Assembly (NCBI GenBank): GCA_964019335.1
Contig: OZ025742.1
Location: forward strand, 186,001 to 250,000
Origin: Diplonema japonicum
Lineage: Eukaryota > Protista > Euglenozoa: Diplonemea
Direction of reading: 5' to 3'
DNA length: 64,000 bases
Position 1 is the stretch's first letter. The number at the start of each line of letters is the position of its first letter. The notes under the pieces are model-generated. The model ran no database searches. It was not told the origin of the DNA and worked only from the letters and a program-made list of their open reading frames with translations. This document shows positions 52,085 to 64,000 of this stretch, in pieces. The position numbers and the translations under genes were made by a program.

Positions 52085-53250
52085 ATGACCAAGTGCTCCT
52101 TAGAAGAAGTGCTTTCAGAAGCCAGAAACTGGACCACAGAATTCAGCAATGTGTGTTTCAAGGTAATGTACATGGACTACCTTGTTGCTCCACTTATACA
52201 ACAAAACACTAAAGAAGTCAAGCAAACTGTTGATGACCAGTTACATCACTGTTTTGCAGATGACATGGCTGTGGTGGCAAGTGGAAACAGTATGGAAGAA
52301 GTGGAGGCACAAGCAAGAAGTCAAGAAGACATGGAAGGTGTGTGGGTGGTCAGAAAAGTGGGGCCTAAATCTGTCAAAGATGAAGACATGCATGATGGCA
52401 TCAGGGCCAAATAAGAAGACAGAATGCAGACCAGTCATGTATCACAAGGATGCAGCAGGGCAGCAAACACTGTTAACATACCAAGAAGAGCCAGTGTTCC
52501 TTGGGTGAAATTCAATGAGAAGATGAACTTCAGGGCACACTTTGTATTCATGATCAAACACTTCTGGTGATGCACAGCAGTCATGAAGGCACTTGCAGGC
52601 ACCAAGTGGGGGTGCAAAGCATCAACCCTCCACACTGTCTACCTCACCTATGTCTTACCTGTGGCAATACGCCCAGAGTCCTGGAGTGTACAGACCCACC
52701 CTGACAGCCAGAGACATTGCAATGTTGGAAGTAGCACACAACACAGCAGCATGCATCATAACAGGCTGCTCCTATGACACTATCCAAGACCTCCTGAAAA
52801 TAGCAAGACTGATCTGTGGATGCAGAACAAGGTGGTGCAGGAGCCTATGTCCAGACTGTCACAGGGAGTGAGGTGTATCTGATCAGAGACTCATGCCTGG
52901 TGACAGCTGCCAGGCAGAGCTGACAGCCCTGGAGATGGCACTCGAGCACTGTGAGACAACAGCAAAACCAGGGGCCCTCCTCACCAACTCACTTTCAGCC
53001 TTGCAAAAACTTCAAGGGCCAACAAGGCAGAGAGAGTCACATGATATGCCTTGGAGAGGCATGGGGTTCAACCCCTTTTCAATATGGCAAAGTGAAGACA
53101 GGATGCTACAAGGTGTTCAAGAGGGTCACCACCATTGAGGTAGCAGGCAAAGACATTAACAGGAAAGTAAAAGAAGTGCAGAAGTAGCAAAGTGTGTCAG
53201 TGGTGGCACCTTCTTCACCTCAATCCTGGGACCTTTCAACCCCAATATTG
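52085..53250 (+). mobile_element. Highly decayed Ingi/I-group-like non-LTR retrotransposon fragment (RT thumb and RNase H)
   Basis: FADDMAV, WGLNLS..KT, PVFLG, ALAGTKWGC...L..VY, AACIITG, S.QAELTAL and TNSLSAL occur in broken frames. Confidence 0.75.
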
Positions 53251-53342
53251 CCAGCCATGCCCCCATTCCACCCAAGGTAGGCTATCAGGTAGTCTTTGTG
53301 CTATTGGGGTGTCTTGTTGGGTTATTTTTTAAAACAACCTGC

Positions 53343-54046
53343 CAATAAAGTACAGTAAAAACAGGGGGGGGGGGGGGGGGGGGAAATACAAAGAATGAGA
53401 AGGGTAAGTTATAAAGGAAAGAAAAATGACAGATGGACCATTACTAGGCCAAGTACAGGTGCCCTTCATGAAAAAAATCTTTTTTTCTGAGGTAAAATAT
53501 CACTATTCAGGTGTTTTTGACTATTTTTTTTGTGAGGAAAAAAATTCTTTGGGCACTTTTTTTTTTTGACCCATGACCATCTCACTTTCACTATTAGCCT
53601 CATTAAGGTCTAGAATAGGTATTTTTGAGGGAAAAAAAATTTTTTTTTGAGCAAAAATCAATTTAAGGGTGTTTTTGGCCACTTTTTTTTGGGAGGAAAA
53701 GCAATTTTTTTGGCTACTATTTTTTTTTCTTTCAGCACACCATGCACCCAATAAAGTACAGTAAAAAAAAAGGGGGGGAAATACAAAGAATGAGAAGGGT
53801 AAGTCAAAGGAGAGAAAACCAACAGATAGACCATTACTAGGCCTGATATAGGCACCCTTATGGAAAAAAATCAATTTTTCTGAGGTAAAAAACCACTTTT
53901 CAGGTGTTTTTGACCACTTGTTCATGTGAAAAATAGTTTTTTTTGGGCACCTTTTTTTTGACCCCCCAAACTTCTCACTTTCACCCCACTTCACTAAATG
54001 CCTCTATTGAGGCCTAGGATAGGTACTTTTGAGAAAAAAAAAATTA
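53343..54046. repeat. Degenerate tandem repeat of about 400 bp (about 1.7 copies), CpG-free
   Basis: CAATAAAGTACAGTAAAAA..GGGAAATACAAAGAATGAGAAGGGTAAGT at 53343 and 53749, and AGG.CTAG.ATAGGTA.TTTTGAG near 53606 and 54010. Confidence 0.7.
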
Positions 54047-54998
54047 GAGAACCGTTCAGCTGGAGGAGCTTGAGAGCTCAGAAGTGGTTTCAGAGCTTGA
54101 GGAGCTTGTGACAGCTGACCCTGAGCTGGTTCTGGTGGTGGAGGTGGGGAACTCGCCAGCTGTCGAAGTCTTGTCCATGAAGACGACGGTCCTTCCTTCC
54201 GGACTTCGGTTCCTCGTTGTCACCGACTCCACAGGCTGTGTTACAAGGATAGGCTCTTGGTTTCTTGAAGAGTGCGACCACCTGACGTCTGTTGATCTCA
54301 TCCTCCCCAATGTTTCCACCATTGATGAAAATCTTTTATATGGGTGCAACAATCTAGAAACCATCAACTTGAATGCGATGACCAATCTTTCTTCCATTGG
54401 TGATGGCTTCTTGGAAGGGTGCGTAAAACTAGAAACCATCGACTTGAATGCGATGACCAATCTTTCTTCTATTGGTCATTACTTCTTGTCTGAGTGCATA
54501 AAACTAGAAACCATCAACTTGAATGCGATGACCAATCTTTCTTCCATTGGTAATCGCTTCTTGTTTAGGTGCGTAAAACTAGAAACCATCAACTTGAATG
54601 CGATGACCAATCTTTCTTCCATTGGTAATGGCTTCTTGTTTAGGTGCGTAAAACTAGAAACCATCGACTTGAATGCGATGACCAATCTTTCTTCTATTGG
54701 TGATTACTTCTTGGAGGGGTGCAAAAAACTAGAAACCATCGACTTGAATGCGATGACCAATCTTTCTTCTACTGGTGATAGCTTCTTGGAAGGGTGCGAA
54801 GAACTAGAAACCATCGACTTGAATGTGATGACCAATCTTTCTTCCATTGGTCATTGCTTCTTGTTAGGGTGCGAAAAACTAGAAACCATCGACTTGAATA
54901 CGTTGACCAATCTTTCTTCCATTGGTGATGGCTTCTTGTCTGGGTGCGTAAAACTAGAATCTGTCGACTTGAATTTAAAAAGAAAAGTCGGTGTTTAG
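54047..54998 (+). pseudogene. 5'-truncated copy 1 of the UBL/BspA-type LRR gene (8 units plus cap)
   Basis: Identity to copies 2 and 3 starts abruptly at GAGAACCGTTCAG. The UBL domain and ATG are missing; the remaining frame is open. Confidence 0.75.
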
Positions 54999-55798
54999 AA
55001 GAAGAAGAAAAAAAGAGGGGAAAAAAAAGAAGAAAAAAGAACACCCTGGCGCTGAGAAACATCTTTGTGGAAAAACCAACGAAAAGCAATCCAATACCTC
55101 GAAGACACCGGGGACCTGCCCCCCTCCGCAACAACTCCACAACAACCATCTAACCTGCTGAAGTAGCATGCCGATCAGAAGGCGGCTGAGGCACTTGTCA
55201 TTTAATCAGAATCCCGAGATCCCATCCCTGATCCCCAAATAGAGAGTGTACCATCCTGTTTCTCGAGGAAACAGAGAACCTACCCCCTCCCCACCACAGC
55301 ACCCGACCAATCAGATGCAGCAGTGTGAAAAAAAAAAGCCCCCCTCTCCCCAAACAAAACAAACAAACAAACATTAGTAGCCAAAAAAAAAAAAAAAAAA
55401 AAAAAAAAAGTGTAAAGTGTTAAACAGCCAGAAAAGCTTGTGGAAATAGAACACCAAGAAAAAAAAAGAGAGAAAAAAAGACCAGGACACCCCCTCCCCG
55501 GTCGTGAGAGGCCTATGGGTGTGGCACGCCATGTCTGAAACGTTTAGCTCCCTTGAAGCTCACACCAGTGTGCGAGTTTGGCCCATTTTATTTTGGCACG
55601 TTGGCGATGGCTGTGGTGGTCGTCGCAAGAGCGCCTGCAGGAAGTATTGGACGATAACAGTTAATGGGTCAGTAATGGGAGTAGGTTTTTTTATTTTCTA
55701 GAGGTTCTTCTTCTTCATTTGACTCCTGCAGCCTTCGAGACAAAGCACACAGGGAAAATACATTAGAAAAAAAGAATAAAATACGAACCCAAAAGAAC

Positions 55799-57596
55799 AT
55801 GAATGGAACAAGAGAGGTGAACGATATGACAGTGTTCGTGAAGACGGGAGGCGGGGTTCACGATGTGGAAGTGTCGGGGAAGGAGACGGTGGGGATCCTG
55901 TACAAGAAGGCAGGGTGTGCTGCTGGTTTACTCGAAGGCAAGTTCGAACTGGTTTGGGAGGGAGAGGTCCTGGACAGGAACGGGGGTGAAGATATCCAGG
56001 AACTCGGGCTCGTGGAGGGCAGCGTGGTCCATGTGGAGGCGAAGATGAGAACCGTTCAGTTGGAGGAGCTTGAGAGCTCAGAAGTGGTTTCAGAGCTTGA
56101 GGAGCTTGTGACAGCTGTCCCTGAGCTGGTTCTGGTGGTGGAGGTGGGGAACTCGCCAGCTGTCGAAGTCTTGTCCATGAAGACGACGGTCCTTCCTTCC
56201 GGACTTCGGTTCCTCGTTGTCACCGACTCCACAGGCTGTGTTACAAGGATAGGCTCTTGGTTTCTTGAAGAGTGCGACCACCTGACGTCTGTTGATCTCA
56301 TCCTCCCCAATGTTTCCACCATTGATGAAAATCTTTTATATGGGTGCAAAAATCTAGAAACCATCAACTTGAATGCGATGACCAATCTTTCTTCTATTGG
56401 TCATTACTTCTTGTCTGAGTGCATAAAACTAGAAACCATCAACTTGAATGCGATGACCAATCTTTCTTCCATTGGTGATGGCTTCTTGGAAGGGTGCGAA
56501 AAACTAGAAACCATCGACTTGAATGCGATGACCAATCTTTCTTCTATTGGTGATTACTTCTTGTCTGAGTGCATAAAACTAGAAACCATCAACTTGAATG
56601 CGATGACCAATCTTTCTTCTATTGGTGATCGCTTCTTGGAAGAGTGCGTAAAACTAGAAACCATCAACTTGAATGCGATGACCAATCTTTCTTCTATTGG
56701 TCATTACTTCTTGTCTGAGTGCATAAAACTAGAAACCATCAACTTGAATGCGATGACCAATCTTTCTTCCATTGGTGATCGCTTCTTGTTTGGGTGCGAA
56801 AAACTAGAAACCATCAACTTGAATGCGATGACCAATCTTTCTTCTATTGGTCATTACTTCTTGGAGGTGCAAAAAACTAGAAACCATCGACTTGAATGCG
56901 ATGGCCAATCTTTCTTCCATTGGTGATAGCTTCTTGTTTAGGTGCGTAAAACTAGAAACCATCAACTTGAATGCGATGACCAATCTTTCTTCTACTGGTG
57001 ATGGCTTCTTGTCTGGGTGCGTAAAACTAGAAACCATCGACTTGAATGCGATGACCAATCTTTCTTCCATTGGTGATTACTTCTTGTCTGAGTGCATAAA
57101 ACTAGAAACCATCAACTTGAATGCGATGACCAATCTTTCTTCTACTGGTGATGGCTTCTTGTTTTGGTGCGTAAAACTAGAAACCATCAACTTGAATGCG
57201 ATGACCAATCTTTCTTCCATTGGTGATAGCTTCTTGTTTGGGTGCGAAAAACTAGAAACCATCGACGTGAATGCGATGACCAATCTTTCTTCCATTGGTG
57301 ATGGCTTCTTGGGAGGGTGCGTAAAACTAGAAACCATCGACTTGAATGCGATGACCAATCTTTCTTCCATTGGTGATGGCTTCTTGGAAGGGTGCGTAAA
57401 ACTAGAAACCATCAACTTGAATGCGATGACCAATCTTTCTTCCATTGGTGATCGCTTCTTGTTTGGGTGCGAAAAACTAGAAACCATCGACTTGAATACG
57501 TTGACCAATCTTTCTTCCATTGGTGATGGCTTCTTGTCTGGGTGCGTAAAACTAGAATCTGTCGACTTGAATTTAAAAAGAAAAGTCGGTGTTTAG
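55799..57596 (+). CDS. Copy 2: ubiquitin-like domain plus 16 BspA/TpLRR-type 25-aa repeats; 2-nt frameshift at about 56866
   Basis: MTVFVKTGGGVHDVEV...ETVG.L...FELVWEGEVL...IQELGLVEGSVVHV aligns with ubiquitin. The unit is LETI(N/D)LNAMTNLSSIGxxFLxxCxK. GGAGGTGC replaces GGAGGGGTGC, a real lesion or a homopolymer error. Confidence 0.8.
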
Positions 57597-59109
57597 AAGA
57601 AGAAGAAAAAAAGAGGGGAAAAAAAAGAAGAAAAAAGAACACCCTGGCGCTGAGAAACATCTTTGTGGAAAAACCAACGAAAAGCAATCCAATACCTCGA
57701 AGACACTGGGGACCTGCCCCCCTCCGCAACAACTCCACAACAACCATCTAACCTGCTGAAGTAGCATGCCGATCAGAAGGCGGCTGAGGCACTTGTCATT
57801 TAATCAGAATCCCGAGATCCCATCCCTGATCCCCAAATAGAGAGTGTACCATCCTGTTTCTCGCAGAAACAGAGAACCTACCCCCTCCCCACCACAGCAC
57901 CCGACCAATCAGATGCAGCAGTGTGAAAAACCGGCACCCTTAGTAGCCAAGAAAAAAAAAAAAAAAGAAAAAAAAAAAGTGTAAAGTGTTAAACAGCCAG
58001 CAAAGCTTGTGGAAAGAGAACACCAAGAAAAAAAAAGAGAGAGAAAAAAAGACCAGGACACCCCTCCCCGGTCGTGAGAGGCCTATGGGTGTGGCATGCC
58101 ATGTCTGAAACCTTTAGCTCCCTTGAAACTCACACCAGTGTGCGAGTTTGGCCCATTTTATTTTGGCACGTTGGCGATGGCTGTGGTGGTCGTCGCAAGA
58201 GCTCCTGTAGGAAGTATTGGACGATAACAGTTAATGGTTTTCGTTTTTCTTCTTTTTTTCTTGTTTTTCTTCTTTTTCTTCTTTTTCTTCTTTTTCTTCT
58301 TAGTTTATCACCGTTCTTACTGAGCGCCATTTGACTTGTCACCTTGATGTTAAAAGATCGACCTTTTTTTTTTAATTTTTATTTATTTATTTTTTTTTTT
58401 TTTTTTGCGGGCCGTTGCTAACCACTTCGTTCTGTTATTTTCATTATTCTTTCCGGCGATAGACTGATACGGGCCATGAAAGCAACCTCTGCTTAATTCC
58501 TGGTACGTGGGAGGCTCCTCTTAAGAAGGGTCGCGACCAGCTGGACGTAAGAGAGTCGGGCCTGGCCGCTGGCATGCGCGTGCTGTTCGGAGCGGTTCCG
58601 CCCCCTTCCCTGACCCCCTTGGCCGTGGGTAGCAGGCCGCCGCAGGAGGAAGGTGAAACGGCGCAATCCCCCATTCCGGGGGCGAGCGGTGCGAGGCTCT
58701 ACTCTGTTCCCGGAGGCGCCCATGGTGCCCATGGCCGCGGACCTGTGCGAGTCGGACGGGATGGAGTCACATTCGGCCTCCTCCGGTGTAGACGGAGAGC
58801 CGTCGCCCGCTCGTCCGTCGCAGTCTCCCGTGCTGGGGGCTGAAGGCGGGGGGCGCATCTCTCCGGAGGTCAGTACCCCAGAAACCTCCAACCCCGATGT
58901 CCGGGTAGGGGGCGGGGAAAAGGTCGCCAGAAAAAGGGTACCTTCCCACGAGACCCAGTCGGCCCAACGCGCCGCCAAGGTCGGGAAGGGCCCTGTCCAA
59001 CGAGATGTGAGGGGGTCCCAGGGTGGTCGATCCACCCCCCTGGGCTCGCAAGGGCCCAGGGCTTGAGCAGCCAACATTAAGGGTTCCTGAGGGAGCCCAC
59101 TTTAGAATT

Positions 59110-59143
<34 letters not shown>

Positions 59144-59168
59144 CCCTTACAACAAATTGACAATGGGG

Positions 59169-59203
<35 letters not shown>

Positions 59204-59270
59204 ACCGGGAGTTTTCCCCCTGAAGTTCCTTTGTTAAAACATGTTTGCTGTTGGGTTTCCGTTTCTTTTT

Positions 59271-59467
59271 GGTTTAACTAGAAGTTTTCCTTCTACAGCT
59301 TGTTTGCTGATGGTTTTGAGTTGATTCTTTTTTATTTTTTATCTTATGGTTTAACTAGAAGTTTTCCTTCTACAGTTTGCTTGCTGATGGTTTTAAGTTG
59401 ATTCTTATTTATTTACTTACACTTTTTGGCTTAACTAGAAGTTTTCCTTCTACAGCTTGTTTGCTGA
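59271..59467 (+). repeat. Three tandem copies (period about 78 bp) of TTAACTAGAAGTTTTCCTTCTACAG(C/T)TTG(T/C)TTGCTGA
   Basis: Copies at about 59273, 59351 and 59431, separated by T-rich spacers. Confidence 0.85.
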
Positions 59468-60497
59468 CGGGTGGGTTTATCGGGCGGGCTTCCATAGCTG
59501 GTGATCTATGGAAGCCTTCCCTATTTTTTCTTTTTTCACGCCGGGCTGGGGGGAAGGACGGCAAGACCACCAACGGAGGAGAAACCGCTGCAGAAAGGGG
59601 AAAGGTGCAGAAAGACGAAGAGTACGAGAAGGCGTCTCACAAAGACTCCCTTTAATTCATATATCTTTTATTTTCTTTTTATTTTTCTTTTCTTCTTTAT
59701 TTTCTTTCTCCTAACCCAACCCCCTTCCTTGACCCCCCCGAAAAAAAAAGAAAAGAAAAGAAAAGATTCATTCCTCCCTAGTTTATTATATTTTGCATCA
59801 GGTCCGCCGAGAAAATAAAAGGAAAAATAAAGAAAGAGAACGGCAACCAAATTTTAAATTCTTATTTATCATCAAAGGAGGTTTGAAAAAGAGAAAAATT
59901 AAAGAGAAGAAAGAGACCTTTTTCTCCTCTATCAATAAGTGATTCACGAACTCGAATCTTTATCACCACTTTTTTGTGCATGCCAGATTTTTTTTTTCTC
60001 CCGCCTTGTTAAAGAAGTTTTAATTTACTAATAATAAAAAAAAAGTGAAAAGAGGAGTAGAAGACGATCCGGTGGGGGGCATGGGAACCATAAACCGTGT
60101 CTTCCATCGCGATCGGCAAGGCGGGGGCTTTTCCGTCCCATGGGTGAAAAGAGGCGGATAAAATCACTGTTCCGGACCCCCCCCCAACACTGAGCTTGCA
60201 CTTTTTCTCCCACACATACCTCTCTTGTTTATCGAAATATCACCATTTTTACGGCGGACGCCAAGAAAAAAAAAAGCCAAGGAGAAGGAGTTTAGGGAGT
60301 TAATGAAAGACCTACGGCCCCAAAGAAGGCGGTGAAAACAGCCATGGTGGGCCAGCCCTGGCAGACAGGGAGCCTGAACACCAAAAACACCGCGGAGCCG
60401 AATTTGCATCCGGAATTTTCGGTTTTCAAACTTACAAAAACCCCCTGTAGGCATCTGCGTCCGTCCAGCCCCATTTTGGCACCCCTTTTGGGTGTGG

Positions 60498-60532
<35 letters not shown>

Positions 60533-60945
60533 AATTGTTTATCTTTCTTCTCCTTTCTCCTTCTCCCCCCCCCCCCCCCCCCCCTTTGGGTATCAAAAAA
60601 AGATTTTCAGAAAGCAGGGGTGAGAAGACCACATGGTATTGGAAGTCCTGTAAAGTAAGTCCTGACCATCCTGGCTCCCCCGTAGTTTCATCCCCACCCT
60701 CTCCTTTCCTTCCCACATCATGGTTTTAATAGTTTCACGAGTGGCGCTCCTTTTGTCGTTGTTGGACTTTAGGGTGAGCTGCTCACTTTCTTTCCTCCCA
60801 AGCTACGCCGTCAAAAGCGTTTCCTTCCTCTCGAGTTTCAGCCTTGAACTGAAATCTACATCAAGTTAAATATGGCGTCCGGGAGTTTTTCCGTCCGGGA
60901 ATTTTTTTTTAGGTAAGGCCGTCAGGGGGCCTGGTCCACTACCAC

Positions 60946-61330
60946 CTAACTACTGGCCTGGGCTGCAAACGGCAACCGCGCGAAGAAACCCCCCAGGGTT
61001 CCCTTTCTGCATCTTTGTCCTCCCTTGCTGCCCCTGAGGCAATCAGCTTGTCGAGCCTTCGTGTGGCCTACTACCTTTCTTAATAGATGCTTTACAGCTG
61101 CGTTCAACCCAATATCCATCGGTTGAACCATGTAGGTGAACCGCTGCGCGACAGGACGGGATGGCCCCCCTGTGTCTTGAGCTACACGCAATATTGCCGA
61201 GAGGACATGCCTTTGCATACCTGGAAAAACTGCAACGATACTCGGCTGTGGTGGTTGCTACCCAGTCCACGCACAACCAAGCTGATGGATTTGAAGGCCG
61301 CCTACACTTTCTTGAAGATGTTCGTTTCAC
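60946..61330 (-). mobile_element. Pogo/Tigger-type DDE transposase remnant
   Basis: FTYMVQPMDIGLNAAVKHLLRK matches the DDE_1 motif T..lQPlD.g.n..fK; WLCVDW lies upstream in another frame. Confidence 0.6.
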
Positions 61331-61417
61331 AGTAGGTTTTTTTATTTTCTAGAGGTTCTTCTTCTTCATTTGACTCCTGCAGCCTTCGAGACAAAGCACA
61401 CAGGGAAAATACATTAG

Positions 61418-61451
<34 letters not shown>

Positions 61452-61465
61452 AATATTAAAAGAAC

Positions 61466-64000
61466 ATGAATGGAAAGAGAGAGAGATCAGGTGAAGAGGT
61501 GAACGATATGACAGTGTTCGTGAAGACGGGAGGCGGGGTTCACGATGTGGAAGTGTCGGGGAAGGAGACGGTGGGGATCCTGTACAAGAAGGCGGGGTGT
61601 GCTGCTGGTTTACTCGAAGGCAAGTTCGAACTGGTTTGGGAGGGAGAGGTCCTGGACAAGAACGGGGGTGAAGATATCCAGGAACTCGGGCTCGTGGAGG
61701 GCAGCGTGGTCCATGTGGAGGCGAAGATGAGAACCGTTCAGTTGGAGGAGCTTGAGAGCTCAGAAGTGGTTTCAGAGCTTGAGGAGCTTGTGACAGCTGA
61801 CCCTGAGCTGGTTCTGGTGGTGGAGGTGGGGAACTCGCCAGCTGTCGAAGTCTTGTCCATGAAGACGACGGTCCTTCCTTCCGGACTTCGGTTCCTCGTT
61901 GTCACCGACTCCACAGGCTGTGTTACAAGGATAGGCTCTTGGTTTCTTGAAGAGTGCGACCACCTGACGTCTGTTGATCTCATCCTCCCCAATGTTTCCA
62001 CCATTGATGAAAATCTTTTATATGGGTGCAACAATCTAGAAACCATCAACTTGAATGCGATGACCAATCTTTCTTCCATTGGTGATGGCTTCTTGGAAGG
62101 GTGCGTAAAACTAGAAACCATCGACTTGAATGCGATGACCAATCTTTCTTCTATTGGTCATTACTTCTTGTCTGAGTGCATAAAACTAGAAACCATCAAC
62201 TTGAATGCGATGACCAATCTTTCTTCCATTGGTGATGGCTTCTTGGAAGGGTGCGTAAAACTAGAAACCATCGACTTGAATGCGATGACCAATCTTTCTT
62301 CTATTGGTCATTACTTCTTGTCTGAGTGCATAAAACTAGAAACCATCAACTTGAATGCGATGACCAATCTTTCTTCCATTGGTAATCGCTTCTTGTTTAG
62401 GTGCGTAAAACTAGAAACCATCGACTTGAATGCGATGACCAATCTTTCTTCTATTCGTAATTACTTCTTGTCTGAGTGCATAAAACTAGAAACCATCAAC
62501 TTGAATGCGATGACCAATCTTTCCTCTATTGGTGATTACTTCTTGTCTGAGTGCGAAAAACTAGAAACCATCAACTTGAATGCGATGACCAATCTTTCTT
62601 CTATTGGTGATCGCTTCTTGGAAGAGTGCGTAAAACTAGAAACCATCAACTTGAATGCGATGACCAATCTTTCTTCCATTGGTAATCGCTTCTTGTTTAG
62701 GTGCGTAAAACTAGAAACCATCGACTTGAATGCGATGACCAATCTTTCTTCTATTCGTAATTACTTCTTGTCTGAGTGCATAAAACTAGAAACCATCAAC
62801 TTGAATGCGATGACCAATCTTTCCTCTATTGGTGATTACTTCTTGTCTGAGTGCGAAAAACTAGAAACCATCAACTTGAATGCGATGACCAATCTTTCTT
62901 CCATTGGTGATCACTTCTTGTTTAGGTGCGTAAAACTAGAAACCATCAACTTGAATGCGATGACCAATCTTTCTTCTATTGGTGATTGCTTCTTGTTTGG
63001 GTGCGTAAAACTAGAAACCATCAACTTGAATGCGATGACCAATCTTTCTTCTATTGGTAATTACTTCTTGTCTGGGTGCAAAAAACTAGAAACCATCAAC
63101 TTGAATGCGATGACCAATCTTTCTTCTATTGGTGATCGCTTCTTGTTTGGGTGCAAAAAACTAGAAACCATCGACTTGAATGCGATGACCAATCTTTCTT
63201 CTATTGGTGATTGCTTCTTGTTTGGGTGCGAAAAACTAGAAACCATCAACTTGAATGCGATGACCAATCTTTCTTCTATTGGTAATTACTTCTTGTCTGG
63301 GTGCAAAAAACTAGAAACCATCAACTTGAATGCGATGACCAATCTTTCTTCTACTGGTTATGGCTTCTTGTTTAGGTGCGTAAAACTAGAAACCATCGAC
63401 TTGAATGCGATGACCAATCTTTCTTCCATTGGTGATTGCTTCTTGTCTGGGTGCGTAAAACTAGAAACCATCAACTTGAATGCGATGACCAATCTTTCTT
63501 CCATTGGTGATTGCTTCTTGTCTGGGTGCGTAAAACTAGAAACCATCAACTTGAATGCGATGACCAATCTTTCTTCCATTGGTAATCGCTTCTTGTTTAG
63601 GTGCGTAAAACTAGAAACCATCAACTTGAATGCGATGACCAATCTTTCTTCCATTGGTGATCGCTTCTTGTTAGGGTGCGTAAAACTAGAAACCATCAAC
63701 TTGAATGCGATGACCAATCTTTCTTCTATTGGTGATTACTTCTTGGAGGGGTGCAAAAAACTAGAAACCATCGACTTGAATGCGATGACCAATCTTTCTT
63801 CCATTGGTAATCGCTTCTTGTTTAGGTGCGTAAAACTAGAAACCATCGACTTGAATGCGATGACCAATCTTTCTTCCATTGGTCATTGCTTCTTGTTAGG
63901 GTGCGAAAAACTAGAAACCATCAACTTGAATGCGATGACCAATCTTTCTTCCATTGGTGATCGCTTCTTGTTTGGGTGCGAAAAACTAGAAACCATCGAC
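61466..64000 (+). CDS. Copy 3: ubiquitin-like domain plus at least 26 LRR units, open to the window end
   Basis: ATG at 61466 (MNGKRERSGEEVNDMTVFVKT...) stays in frame with the last codon for at least 845 codons. It is missing from the ORF track because it has no stop. Confidence 0.88.
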   Translation, partial: MNGKRERSGEEVNDMTVFVKTGGGVHDVEVSGKETVGILYKKAGCAAGLLEGKFELVWEGEVLDKNGGEDIQELGLVEGSVVHVEAKMRTVQLEELESSEVVSELEELVTADPELVLVVEVGNSPAVEVLSMKTTVLPSGLRFLVVTDSTGCVTRIGSWFLEECDHLTSVDLILPNVSTIDENLLYGCNNLETINLNAMTNLSSIGDGFLEGCVKLETIDLNAMTNLSSIGHYFLSECIKLETINLNAMTNLSSIGDGFLEGCVKLETIDLNAMTNLSSIGHYFLSECIKLETINLNAMTNLSSIGNRFLFRCVKLETIDLNAMTNLSSIRNYFLSECIKLETINLNAMTNLSSIGDYFLSECEKLETINLNAMTNLSSIGDRFLEECVKLETINLNAMTNLSSIGNRFLFRCVKLETIDLNAMTNLSSIRNYFLSECIKLETINLNAMTNLSSIGDYFLSECEKLETINLNAMTNLSSIGDHFLFRCVKLETINLNAMTNLSSIGDCFLFGCVKLETINLNAMTNLSSIGNYFLSGCKKLETINLNAMTNLSSIGDRFLFGCKKLETIDLNAMTNLSSIGDCFLFGCEKLETINLNAMTNLSSIGNYFLSGCKKLETINLNAMTNLSSTGYGFLFRCVKLETIDLNAMTNLSSIGDCFLSGCVKLETINLNAMTNLSSIGDCFLSGCVKLETINLNAMTNLSSIGNRFLFRCVKLETINLNAMTNLSSIGDRFLLGCVKLETINLNAMTNLSSIGDYFLEGCKKLETIDLNAMTNLSSIGNRFLFRCVKLETIDLNAMTNLSSIGHCFLLGCEKLETINLNAMTNLSSIGDRFLFGCEKLETID

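Follow-up and report, generated by a model that had tools for sequence, protein, structure and literature searches.

A ubiquitin-like, leucine-rich-repeat gene family of Diplonema japonicum with five hypervariable codons per repeat

The window analysed here is a stretch of 64,000 nucleotides from the diplonemid Diplonema japonicum (assembly GCA_964019335.1, contig OZ025742.1, positions 186,001 to 250,000; C95:186001-250000 in our numbering), and between positions 54047 and 64000 its plus strand carries three tandem paralogues of a gene that joins a ubiquitin-like domain (UBL) to a long array of leucine-rich repeats (LRR). The repeats of these UBL-LRR genes are close copies of one another, differ in number and order from gene to gene, and vary at the same few codons, which raises the question of what has driven and confined this variation and what proteins built in this way might do. 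An initial annotation, made from the sequence alone, had proposed a rapidly diversifying library of cytosolic binders, conceptually like the variable lymphocyte receptors (VLRs) of lampreys, that would route bound targets to degradation. We parsed the repeats unit by unit, searched the D. japonicum genome (62.5 Mb in 132 contigs) for relatives, and compared the encoded proteins and their predicted structures with known systems.

Five hypervariable codons on a homogenised scaffold

Tandem Repeats Finder (TRF) reports 75-bp arrays in all three copies, with 8.5 (54339-54974), 16.5 (56341-57572) and 26.2 units (62036-63997), and the unit-by-unit parse resolves these into 8, 16 and 26 full units within the window, each array being closed by a partial unit. 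Both methods bear out the initial annotation, which had counted 8, 16 and at least 26 units beside non-repeat sequence that it took to be nearly identical; the non-repeat parts of the three copies share 96-100% identity. For the analysis of variation we used 353 in-frame units (217 distinct DNA sequences) from 28 genes of a 93-100% identical subfamily, setting aside the subfamilies of about 80% identity on contigs C85, C91 and C93.

These units are approximately 90% identical, and their differences are very unevenly distributed. Nineteen of the 25 codons are almost fixed, silent sites included, save for codon 14, which is TCC in 193 units and TCT in 152. Codon 5 toggles between N and D, and codons 17, 18, 21, 22 and 24 (x1 to x5) have entropies of 1.3-2.5 bits each; the residues originally listed for x1 to x5, the silent site at codon 14 and the N/D toggle are all present. 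Within the five variable codons, up to four different bases occur at the first and second positions, and the third position is fixed (NAT, NNC, NNG, NNA). These five codons account for almost all of the variation, a pattern far beyond chance, and the near letter-identity of the scaffold even at silent sites reflects concerted evolution.

By the Nei-Gojobori method the proportions of nonsynonymous (pN) and synonymous (pS) differences at the five variable codons are 0.379 and 0.070, a pN/pS ratio of 5.4, versus 0.015 and 0.062, a ratio of 0.25, at the 19 scaffold codons. A per-codon comparison across units had been proposed as a check on the initial annotation, and its outcome favours that annotation. 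On a minimum spanning tree of the units the five codons account for 180 nonsynonymous and 9 synonymous steps, and the remainder of the unit for 86 and 48 (Fisher p = 4e-13), with codon 5 contributing 34 of those 86; per site, this corresponds to 15.0 nonsynonymous steps at the variable codons versus 3.6 synonymous steps in the scaffold. Selection is measured here by pairwise counts and a minimum spanning tree. Neither relaxed constraint nor old divergence can yield such a pattern, the latter being excluded by the fixed third bases beside such freedom at the first and second positions, and the best reading is therefore diversifying selection acting on a homogenised scaffold.

Among the 353 units there are 131 different five-residue signatures. 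Linkage between the x1x2, x3x4 and x5 half-modules is significant but incomplete: ten common x1x2 pairs and six common x3x4 pairs make up most units, and 92 x1x2-x3x4 combinations are seen. The half-module combinations that had first suggested recombination (DY with SE or EG, DR with EE, FG or LG, and DG with EG, SG, FW or GG) all occur.

Tandem block duplication and unequal exchange lengthen, shorten and rearrange the arrays, and point changes are added at the variable codons. In copy 3 the block of units 5-7 recurs as units 9-11, and the gene at C95:260607-262886 (L033) contains the block HCYGE NRFEK NRSWE four times in a row, a very recent expansion with a 225-bp period. Closing units are common to arrays, unit order is common to some paralogues, and paralogues share 31 unit bigrams versus 9.5 after shuffling. 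Given these tandem blocks, shared closing units and shared orders, the apparent shuffling of units is germline unequal exchange together with block duplication. Nothing in the assembled genes that were read points to somatic assembly: they are complete germline genes, and their arrays differ through these same processes; apart from truncated gene copies, no orphan LRR cassettes were found in the intergenic DNA. A VLR-type system was rejected because the genes are complete (19 of the 28 have head, array and tail) and the variable residues are predicted to lie off the concave strand. The likeness to VLRs is a loose one; lamprey and hagfish VLRs start from an incomplete germline gene with donor cassettes, of which there is no counterpart here.

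Head, solenoid and variable face

By sequence match and by model the repeats are LRRs of the BspA/TpLRR type. Pfam LRR_5 (PF13306) matches all three window copies with 100-334 bits against a cut-off of 27.7 (E-values of approximately 1e-29 to 1e-101), and the 25-residue unit consensus, LETI(N/D)LNAMTNLSSIG-xx-FL-xx-C-x-K, agrees with the 23-residue BspA/TpLRR consensus with which we compared it, L-x-x-I-x-L-(P/N)...I-G-x-x-(A/F)-(F/L)-x-x-C. The nearest solved relatives by both sequence and fold are 4fs7, to whose repeats the units can be aligned, 4gt6, 4h09, 6mlx (TpLRR) and 4cp6; in Foldseek, 6mlx matches the repeat model with a template modelling score (TM-score) of 0.66 and a root-mean-square deviation (rmsd) of 2.8 Å over 180 columns. 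An AlphaFold model of a 403-residue member has a mean predicted local distance difference test score (pLDDT) of 80.7, with 80-95 in the repeats, and consists of a beta-grasp head joined through a helical linker and two degenerate cap repeats to an all-beta solenoid. DSSP assigns each modelled unit three short strands, at unit positions 25-5, 14-15 and 20-21.

The strand LETI(N/D)L, which forms the canonical concave face, is invariant save for the N/D toggle. In the modelled secondary structure, residues 17-18 occupy the turn leading into the third short strand, residues 21-22 belong to this strand and the stretch right behind it, and residue 24 immediately precedes the next concave strand. We infer that, from one turn to the next, the variable residues are stacked along a single side of the triangular solenoid, made up of the third short strand with its two corners, off the concave face. 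A helical convex face, suggested by the i, i+1, i+4, i+5 spacing, was rejected because the model has short strands and no helix there.

Profile and model evidence agree that the N-terminal head is a true ubiquitin fold, so that both domain assignments of the initial annotation hold. The window UBL alone scores 23.5 bits against the Pfam ubiquitin cut-off of 25.4; the UBL of the family member P0032 passes that cut-off with 26.2 bits, and a profile of 25 family members matches ubiquitin variants, the parkin UBL and ISG15 over positions 2-75 (E 4e-6 to 8e-6). The model of the copy 2 UBL (pLDDT 90.5) has the order beta-beta-alpha-beta-beta-3(10)-beta and is matched by Foldseek to ubiquitin, NEDD8, ISG15 and the Dsk2 UBL (TM-scores 0.82-0.88, rmsd 1.3-2.0 Å), with a proteasome-midnolin entry also among the fold matches. 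The domain runs on into HVEAKMRTVQLEEL and the linker helix with no exposed C-terminal Gly-Gly; it is therefore an integral UBL, and a conjugatable ubiquitin-like modifier is ruled out. In alignment with ubiquitin, I44 and H68 have counterparts, and two of the three residues of the hydrophobic patch differ, L8 being replaced by G and V70 by E. The helical linker and cap are conserved across the family, and the UBL and linker together are under purifying selection (pN/pS 0.31, pS 0.025).

Pfam finds no NB-ARC/NACHT, TIR or kinase domain in the window copies, and there is no stalk. A receptor of the nucleotide-binding LRR (NLR)/STAND class was accordingly rejected, the gap of approximately 100 residues between UBL and LRR being also too small for such a domain. 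An F-box/LRR (FBXL) receptor was rejected because Pfam gives no F-box match, FBXL2 appearing as a weak LRR match only.

Window copies, family distribution and location signals

The three window copies are in different states (Table 1). Homology of copy 1 to copy 2 begins exactly at the codon of copy 2 residue 84, which is directly preceded by an in-frame TAG and abutted by a repeat block (52085-54046). Such a start marks copy 1 as a 5'-truncated remnant, in line with the earlier observation that it lacks the UBL, and it is probably a pseudogene or an LRR-only remnant. The repeat block consists of degenerate T-rich interspersed repeats lying right at the truncation point, and may mark the event that removed the UBL exon. 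In copy 2 the 73-bp length of unit 7 breaks the frame and splits the open reading frame (ORF) into 55799-56926 and 56847-57596. Copy 3 extends for 114 bp beyond the window on the contig, and encodes 882 amino acids with 27 full units and the tail LNLKRKKRKVGV.

Table 1. Features of the UBL-LRR loci in the window, and related places elsewhere in the genome
Feature	Position	Strand	Content and evidence
Copy 1	54047..54998	+	5'-truncated, without UBL and original start; linker/cap, 8 full units, closing unit, tail LNLKRKVGV
Copy 1 array	54354..54953	+	8 units of 75 bp; TRF and unit parse
Copy 2	55799..57596	+	UBL, linker/cap, 16 units, tail; frameshifted; LRR_5 E 9e-29, ubiquitin E 4.8e-5
Copy 2 UBL	55826..56050	+	Beta-grasp without C-terminal Gly-Gly; model, Foldseek, family profile
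Copy 2 linker and caps	56051..56353	+	Helical linker, then two degenerate capping LRRs; DSSP of models, family-wide conservation
Copy 2 array	56354..57551	+	16 units; unit parse
Copy 2 unit 7	56804..56876	+	73 bp, GGGG to GG (2-bp loss); unit parse of assembled sequence
Copy 2 end	57552..57596	+	Closing partial unit, polybasic tail LESVDLNLKRKVGV, stop
Copy 3	61466..64000	+	Intact gene crossing the window edge
Copy 3 UBL	61508..61732	+	
Copy 3 array	62036..64000	+	26 full units and start of 27th; TRF and unit parse
Telomere-adjacent member L037	C18:729800-733931		
Telomere-adjacent member L044	C43:551700-553867		
Telomere-adjacent member L049	C67:493500-497900		
Truncated-copy set	C18:729185, C21:687338, C43:551077, C67:492866, C92:9648, C61:115549		

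The 3.8-kb spacer between copies 2 and 3 contains 32 T, 25 bp and 32 A, which form a perfect long hairpin, and beside it a 77-bp tandem repeat of 2.6 copies (these elements lie at 59112-59200 and 59265-59467). An Rfam scan of 57700-61460 gave sub-threshold matches only, on the T32/A32 palindrome. Parts of the spacer recur elsewhere in the gene array at 94-99% identity. Over window positions 1-50000 the AT skew is mostly negative; long ORFs lie mostly on the minus strand to approximately 48 kb and are followed by the plus-strand genes, so that the UBL-LRR array seems to start at a coding-strand switch.

The 177-residue N-terminal module has at least 151 matches genome-wide. Family genes form tandem arrays on C95 (nine in 50 kb, spaced roughly 3-7 kb), C85, C91, C93, C66 and C114 and also occur near many contig ends, and across the family the arrays range from 2 to 27 near-identical 25-residue turns. 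On C18, C43 and C67 no gene separates a family member from the terminal (GCAAACCC)n repeats. The C43 array is broken inside a unit and the telomere repeat begins approximately 120 bp after the resulting stop, an end that looks like a healed break within the gene. The arrangement seen in the window, a UBL-less 5'-truncated copy with a full-length gene close downstream, recurs at several chromosome ends, and this pair seems to have spread as one segment. The genes undergo birth and death within these tandem and subtelomeric arrays. We found no description of the family in the literature on diplonemid LRR, BspA or ubiquitin-like proteins.

A HMMER search with the N-terminal module returned 416 proteins. 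Those spanning the whole module come from Diplonema transcriptomes (EukProt D. japonicum and D. ambulator) with 28-72% identity, and the 20 that were looked up comprise 18 from D. japonicum and two from D. ambulator; a search started from a D. ambulator member found only itself. Transcribed relatives at such distances indicate that the family is old within Diplonema, very diverse, and at least partly transcribed. One protein, P0018 (1087 amino acids), combines a signal-peptide-like start, LRR_5 repeats and a subtilase domain in a bacterial-looking architecture, and carries two copies of the Diplonema pre-LRR linker/cap module (28% identity over 112 residues, E 3e-8). Genome and metagenome scans for its source gave no match, and the ESM Atlas gave low-score bacterial architectures only; judged by this resemblance, P0018 may point to a bacterial source for the LRR module.

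The window proteins have no signal peptide or transmembrane segment, as the initial annotation had stated: the N terminus is hydrophilic, and the highest Kyte-Doolittle 19-residue means are 1.2-1.5. The tails of the window subfamily, LNLKRK(KRK)VGV or VSV, contain no cysteine and hence no CaaX motif, and the KRKVGV/KRKKRKVGV sequence resembles either a nuclear import signal of the classical type or a polybasic patch that binds membranes. Many divergent paralogues end in a polybasic stretch with a CaaX motif (CIVC, CLLM, CVVS, CSIL or CCIS), as found in P0012, P0015, P0025, P0034, P0037 and P0105, or in a hydrophobic tail anchor, which points to the cytosolic face of membranes. The original description of the proteins as cytosolic is right in that secretion signals are lacking, but too simple in view of the import-like tail here and the CaaX motifs and tail anchors elsewhere in the family.

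A candidate binder repertoire and its alternatives

We consider it rather probable that these genes constitute a diversified intracellular binder repertoire under positive selection. In such a repertoire the five variable residues of successive turns would form a customisable binding surface, each paralogue would bind a different ligand, and the UBL would serve as the constant output or adaptor end, for example through attachment to ubiquitin receptors of the proteasome or p97. Placement of the protein in the nucleus or at the cytosolic face of membranes would fall to the polybasic tail, joined in other subfamilies by a CaaX motif or tail anchor, and the most likely setting would be a conflict with partners that themselves change rapidly, for example viruses, prey or bacteria living inside the cell. 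Routing of bound targets to degradation through the UBL is a candidate function that we put forward tentatively and think on balance unlikely; what makes it plausible is the analogy to Rad23, Dsk2 and midnolin, shuttles that likewise carry a UBL at their head. Less likely again would be an innate-immune or restriction repertoire, in which the LRR face of each paralogue captures a different foreign protein (of viral origin, made by an intracellular bacterium, or an effector of an endosymbiont), the UBL docks to the proteasome, p97 or autophagy, disposal is ubiquitin-independent in the manner of midnolin, and expansion of the family is tied to endosymbionts. D. japonicum has two resident Holosporaceae endosymbionts, which encode a type VI secretion system and LRR proteins.

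Several observations weigh against a functional binder repertoire. Two of the three window copies are defective, copy 1 by truncation and copy 2 by its frameshift, and among the 28 genes read, 9 show truncation or aberrant ends. We found no transcript of the window subfamily; nothing transcript-derived exceeded 70% identity to it, the paralogues recovered having 51-68%. The units that were counted are related rather than independent, and their event counts may be raised by recombination. For the variable residues, a surface position is predicted from secondary structure only. Two of three residues of the ubiquitin hydrophobic patch are lost from the UBL, so that binding to ubiquitin receptors is not assured.

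The first two kinds of observation are also what a largely non-functional, selfish subtelomeric repeat family would present: the young subfamily would be multiplying through segmental duplication and ectopic exchange, leaving many dead copies, with the five-codon pattern a leftover of reshuffled old unit types under no ongoing selection. Roughly a third of the genes read look broken, copies adjoin telomere repeats with one array cut approximately 120 bp from them, the intergenic DNA between copies is about 98% identical, no transcript of the window subfamily was found, and the half-modules are partly linked and unit order partly inherited. However, relaxed constraint predicts a pN/pS of at most 1, far from the 5.4 observed at the variable codons, and would not leave fixed third bases beside variable first and second bases; furthermore, the UBL and linker are under purifying selection (0.31), and 19 of the 28 genes retain long open frames (up to 882 amino acids) and the canonical tail. 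We regard a selfish family as improbable. That the arrays or their unit orders are artefacts of mis-assembly has a negligible probability in our estimation, even though units of about 90% identity invite such errors and the 2-bp loss in copy 2 sits in a G run. The same architecture with intact frames recurs at dozens of independent loci, words of the window stretch are found in runs from several studies, and the arrays, at no more than 2.1 kb, are far below the length of the PacBio HiFi reads from which the published assembly was made (102x coverage, hifiasm; genome note without gene annotation, PMC13598402).

A different function for the variable face would be expected if the proteins were surface proteins or adhesins, as in the BspA-like families of Trichomonas and Entamoeba, reaching the surface by an unconventional or lipid-anchored route and contacting prey, bacteria or other cells, the variation then representing extracellular ligand or antigen diversity. 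Protist families of the BspA-like kind are regarded as surface proteins, one Entamoeba BspA with a CaaX motif has been shown at the cell surface, and most TvBspA proteins lack signal peptide and transmembrane segment (PMC2843621); divergent Diplonema paralogues likewise bear CaaX motifs or C-terminal hydrophobic tails. The window proteins nevertheless have neither signal peptide nor transmembrane segment and their subfamily has no CaaX motif, an N-terminal UBL is a module of cytosolic or nuclear type, and an invariant ladder of free cysteines and a tail like a nuclear localisation signal fit the cell interior better, while a tail anchor with the LRR on its N-terminal side would put the LRR on the cytosolic side. 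A surface role is in our view doubtful, at about the same low level as the immune role set out above. More doubtful still is a modular code reader, in which the two di-residues of every turn would recognise a single element of a linear polymer, be it nucleic acid, extended peptide or glycan, as in TALE, PUF or PPR proteins, with the import-like tail leading to the nucleus. The limited alphabet of 10 common x1x2 and 6 common x3x4 pairs, the invariant scaffold with its very variable unit number, and the resemblance of KRKKRKV to a nuclear import signal are what such a reader might show, but 131 signatures in 353 units are far above the need of a four- to seven-letter code and no basic stripe is predicted, D, E, Y, G and S being as frequent at the variable sites as R and K. 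We know of no LRR protein with a code of one unit per monomer.

An intracellular binder repertoire under positive selection resembles several known systems in part. The LRRs of plant NLRs and receptor-like proteins, and at the somatic extreme lamprey VLRs, use the solenoid as a customisable binding surface. Germline LRR immune receptors show positive selection confined to solvent-exposed repeat positions and evolve in tandem arrays by unequal crossing-over and birth-and-death, and the selection and array dynamics of the Diplonema family match theirs. The Diplonema proteins differ from these receptors in having no NB-ARC/NACHT, TIR, kinase or stalk, and in the predicted position of their variable sites off the concave strand. 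With Rad23, Dsk2/ubiquilin and midnolin they share, in architecture only, an N-terminal non-conjugatable UBL joined to a separate substrate-binding module. In those proteins the cargo module is a ubiquitin-associated (UBA) or 'Catch' domain rather than an LRR, the genes are single-copy housekeeping genes, and the hydrophobic patch of ubiquitin is only partly conserved in the Diplonema UBL, whose binding to the proteasome is putative.

Among BspA-like proteins, the best sequence and fold matches to the repeats are the bacterial BspA/TpLRR proteins (4fs7, 4gt6, 4h09, 6mlx and 4cp6, PcpA), which differ in being secreted or at the surface, in their heterogeneous repeats of 23 residues where the Diplonema unit has 25, and in having no UBL. 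The closest parallel in family structure is with TvBspA of Trichomonas vaginalis, with 911 genes (PMC2843621), and EhBspA of Entamoeba: these too have LRR_5/TpLRR repeats and form very large, clustered, pseudogene-rich protist families, most of whose members lack signal peptide and transmembrane segment, and some Entamoeba BspA members have CaaX C-termini as do the divergent Diplonema paralogues (PMC2843621). They have no N-terminal UBL (the word 'ubiquitin' is absent from PMC2843621), they are thought to act at the parasite surface, and five hypervariable codons on an invariant scaffold have not been reported for them.

Fusions of a UBL to a BspA-related solenoid are also seen in ubiquitin plus DUF285 proteins of marine metagenomes and giant viruses. 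In the ESM Atlas, the nearest neighbours of residues 1-190 of L038:99-1307 are clusters with PF00240 and PF03382 (DUF285), some labelled viral, at scores of 0.80-0.83, which we treat as a lead and which may reflect homology or convergence; the window proteins differ in having no Pfam DUF285 match. DUF285, an LRR-like repeat, belongs to families expanded in algae and giant viruses, and fusions of a UBL with a solenoid may occur more widely among marine plankton.

Neither large BspA-like families nor LRR repertoires under positive selection are new in themselves. What is new here is the UBL head, the predicted intracellular targeting tails, the predicted position of the variable face off the concave surface, and the extreme contrast between scaffold and variable codons. 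The family combines a ubiquitin-like head with a type of binding scaffold familiar from adhesins and immune receptors, and its invariant scaffold with five to six hypervariable codons per turn is among the cleanest per-site signatures of diversifying selection. A variable face located away from the classical concave surface would broaden the view of ligand binding by LRRs. In the ocean, diplonemids rank with the most abundant and diverse of the heterotrophic eukaryotes, and to our knowledge nothing is known of how they recognise viruses, bacteria or prey. If expressed, the UBL-LRR family would be a natural counterpart of the binder libraries engineered from repeat proteins, and a candidate repertoire for recognition whose origin is independent of the animal and plant systems.

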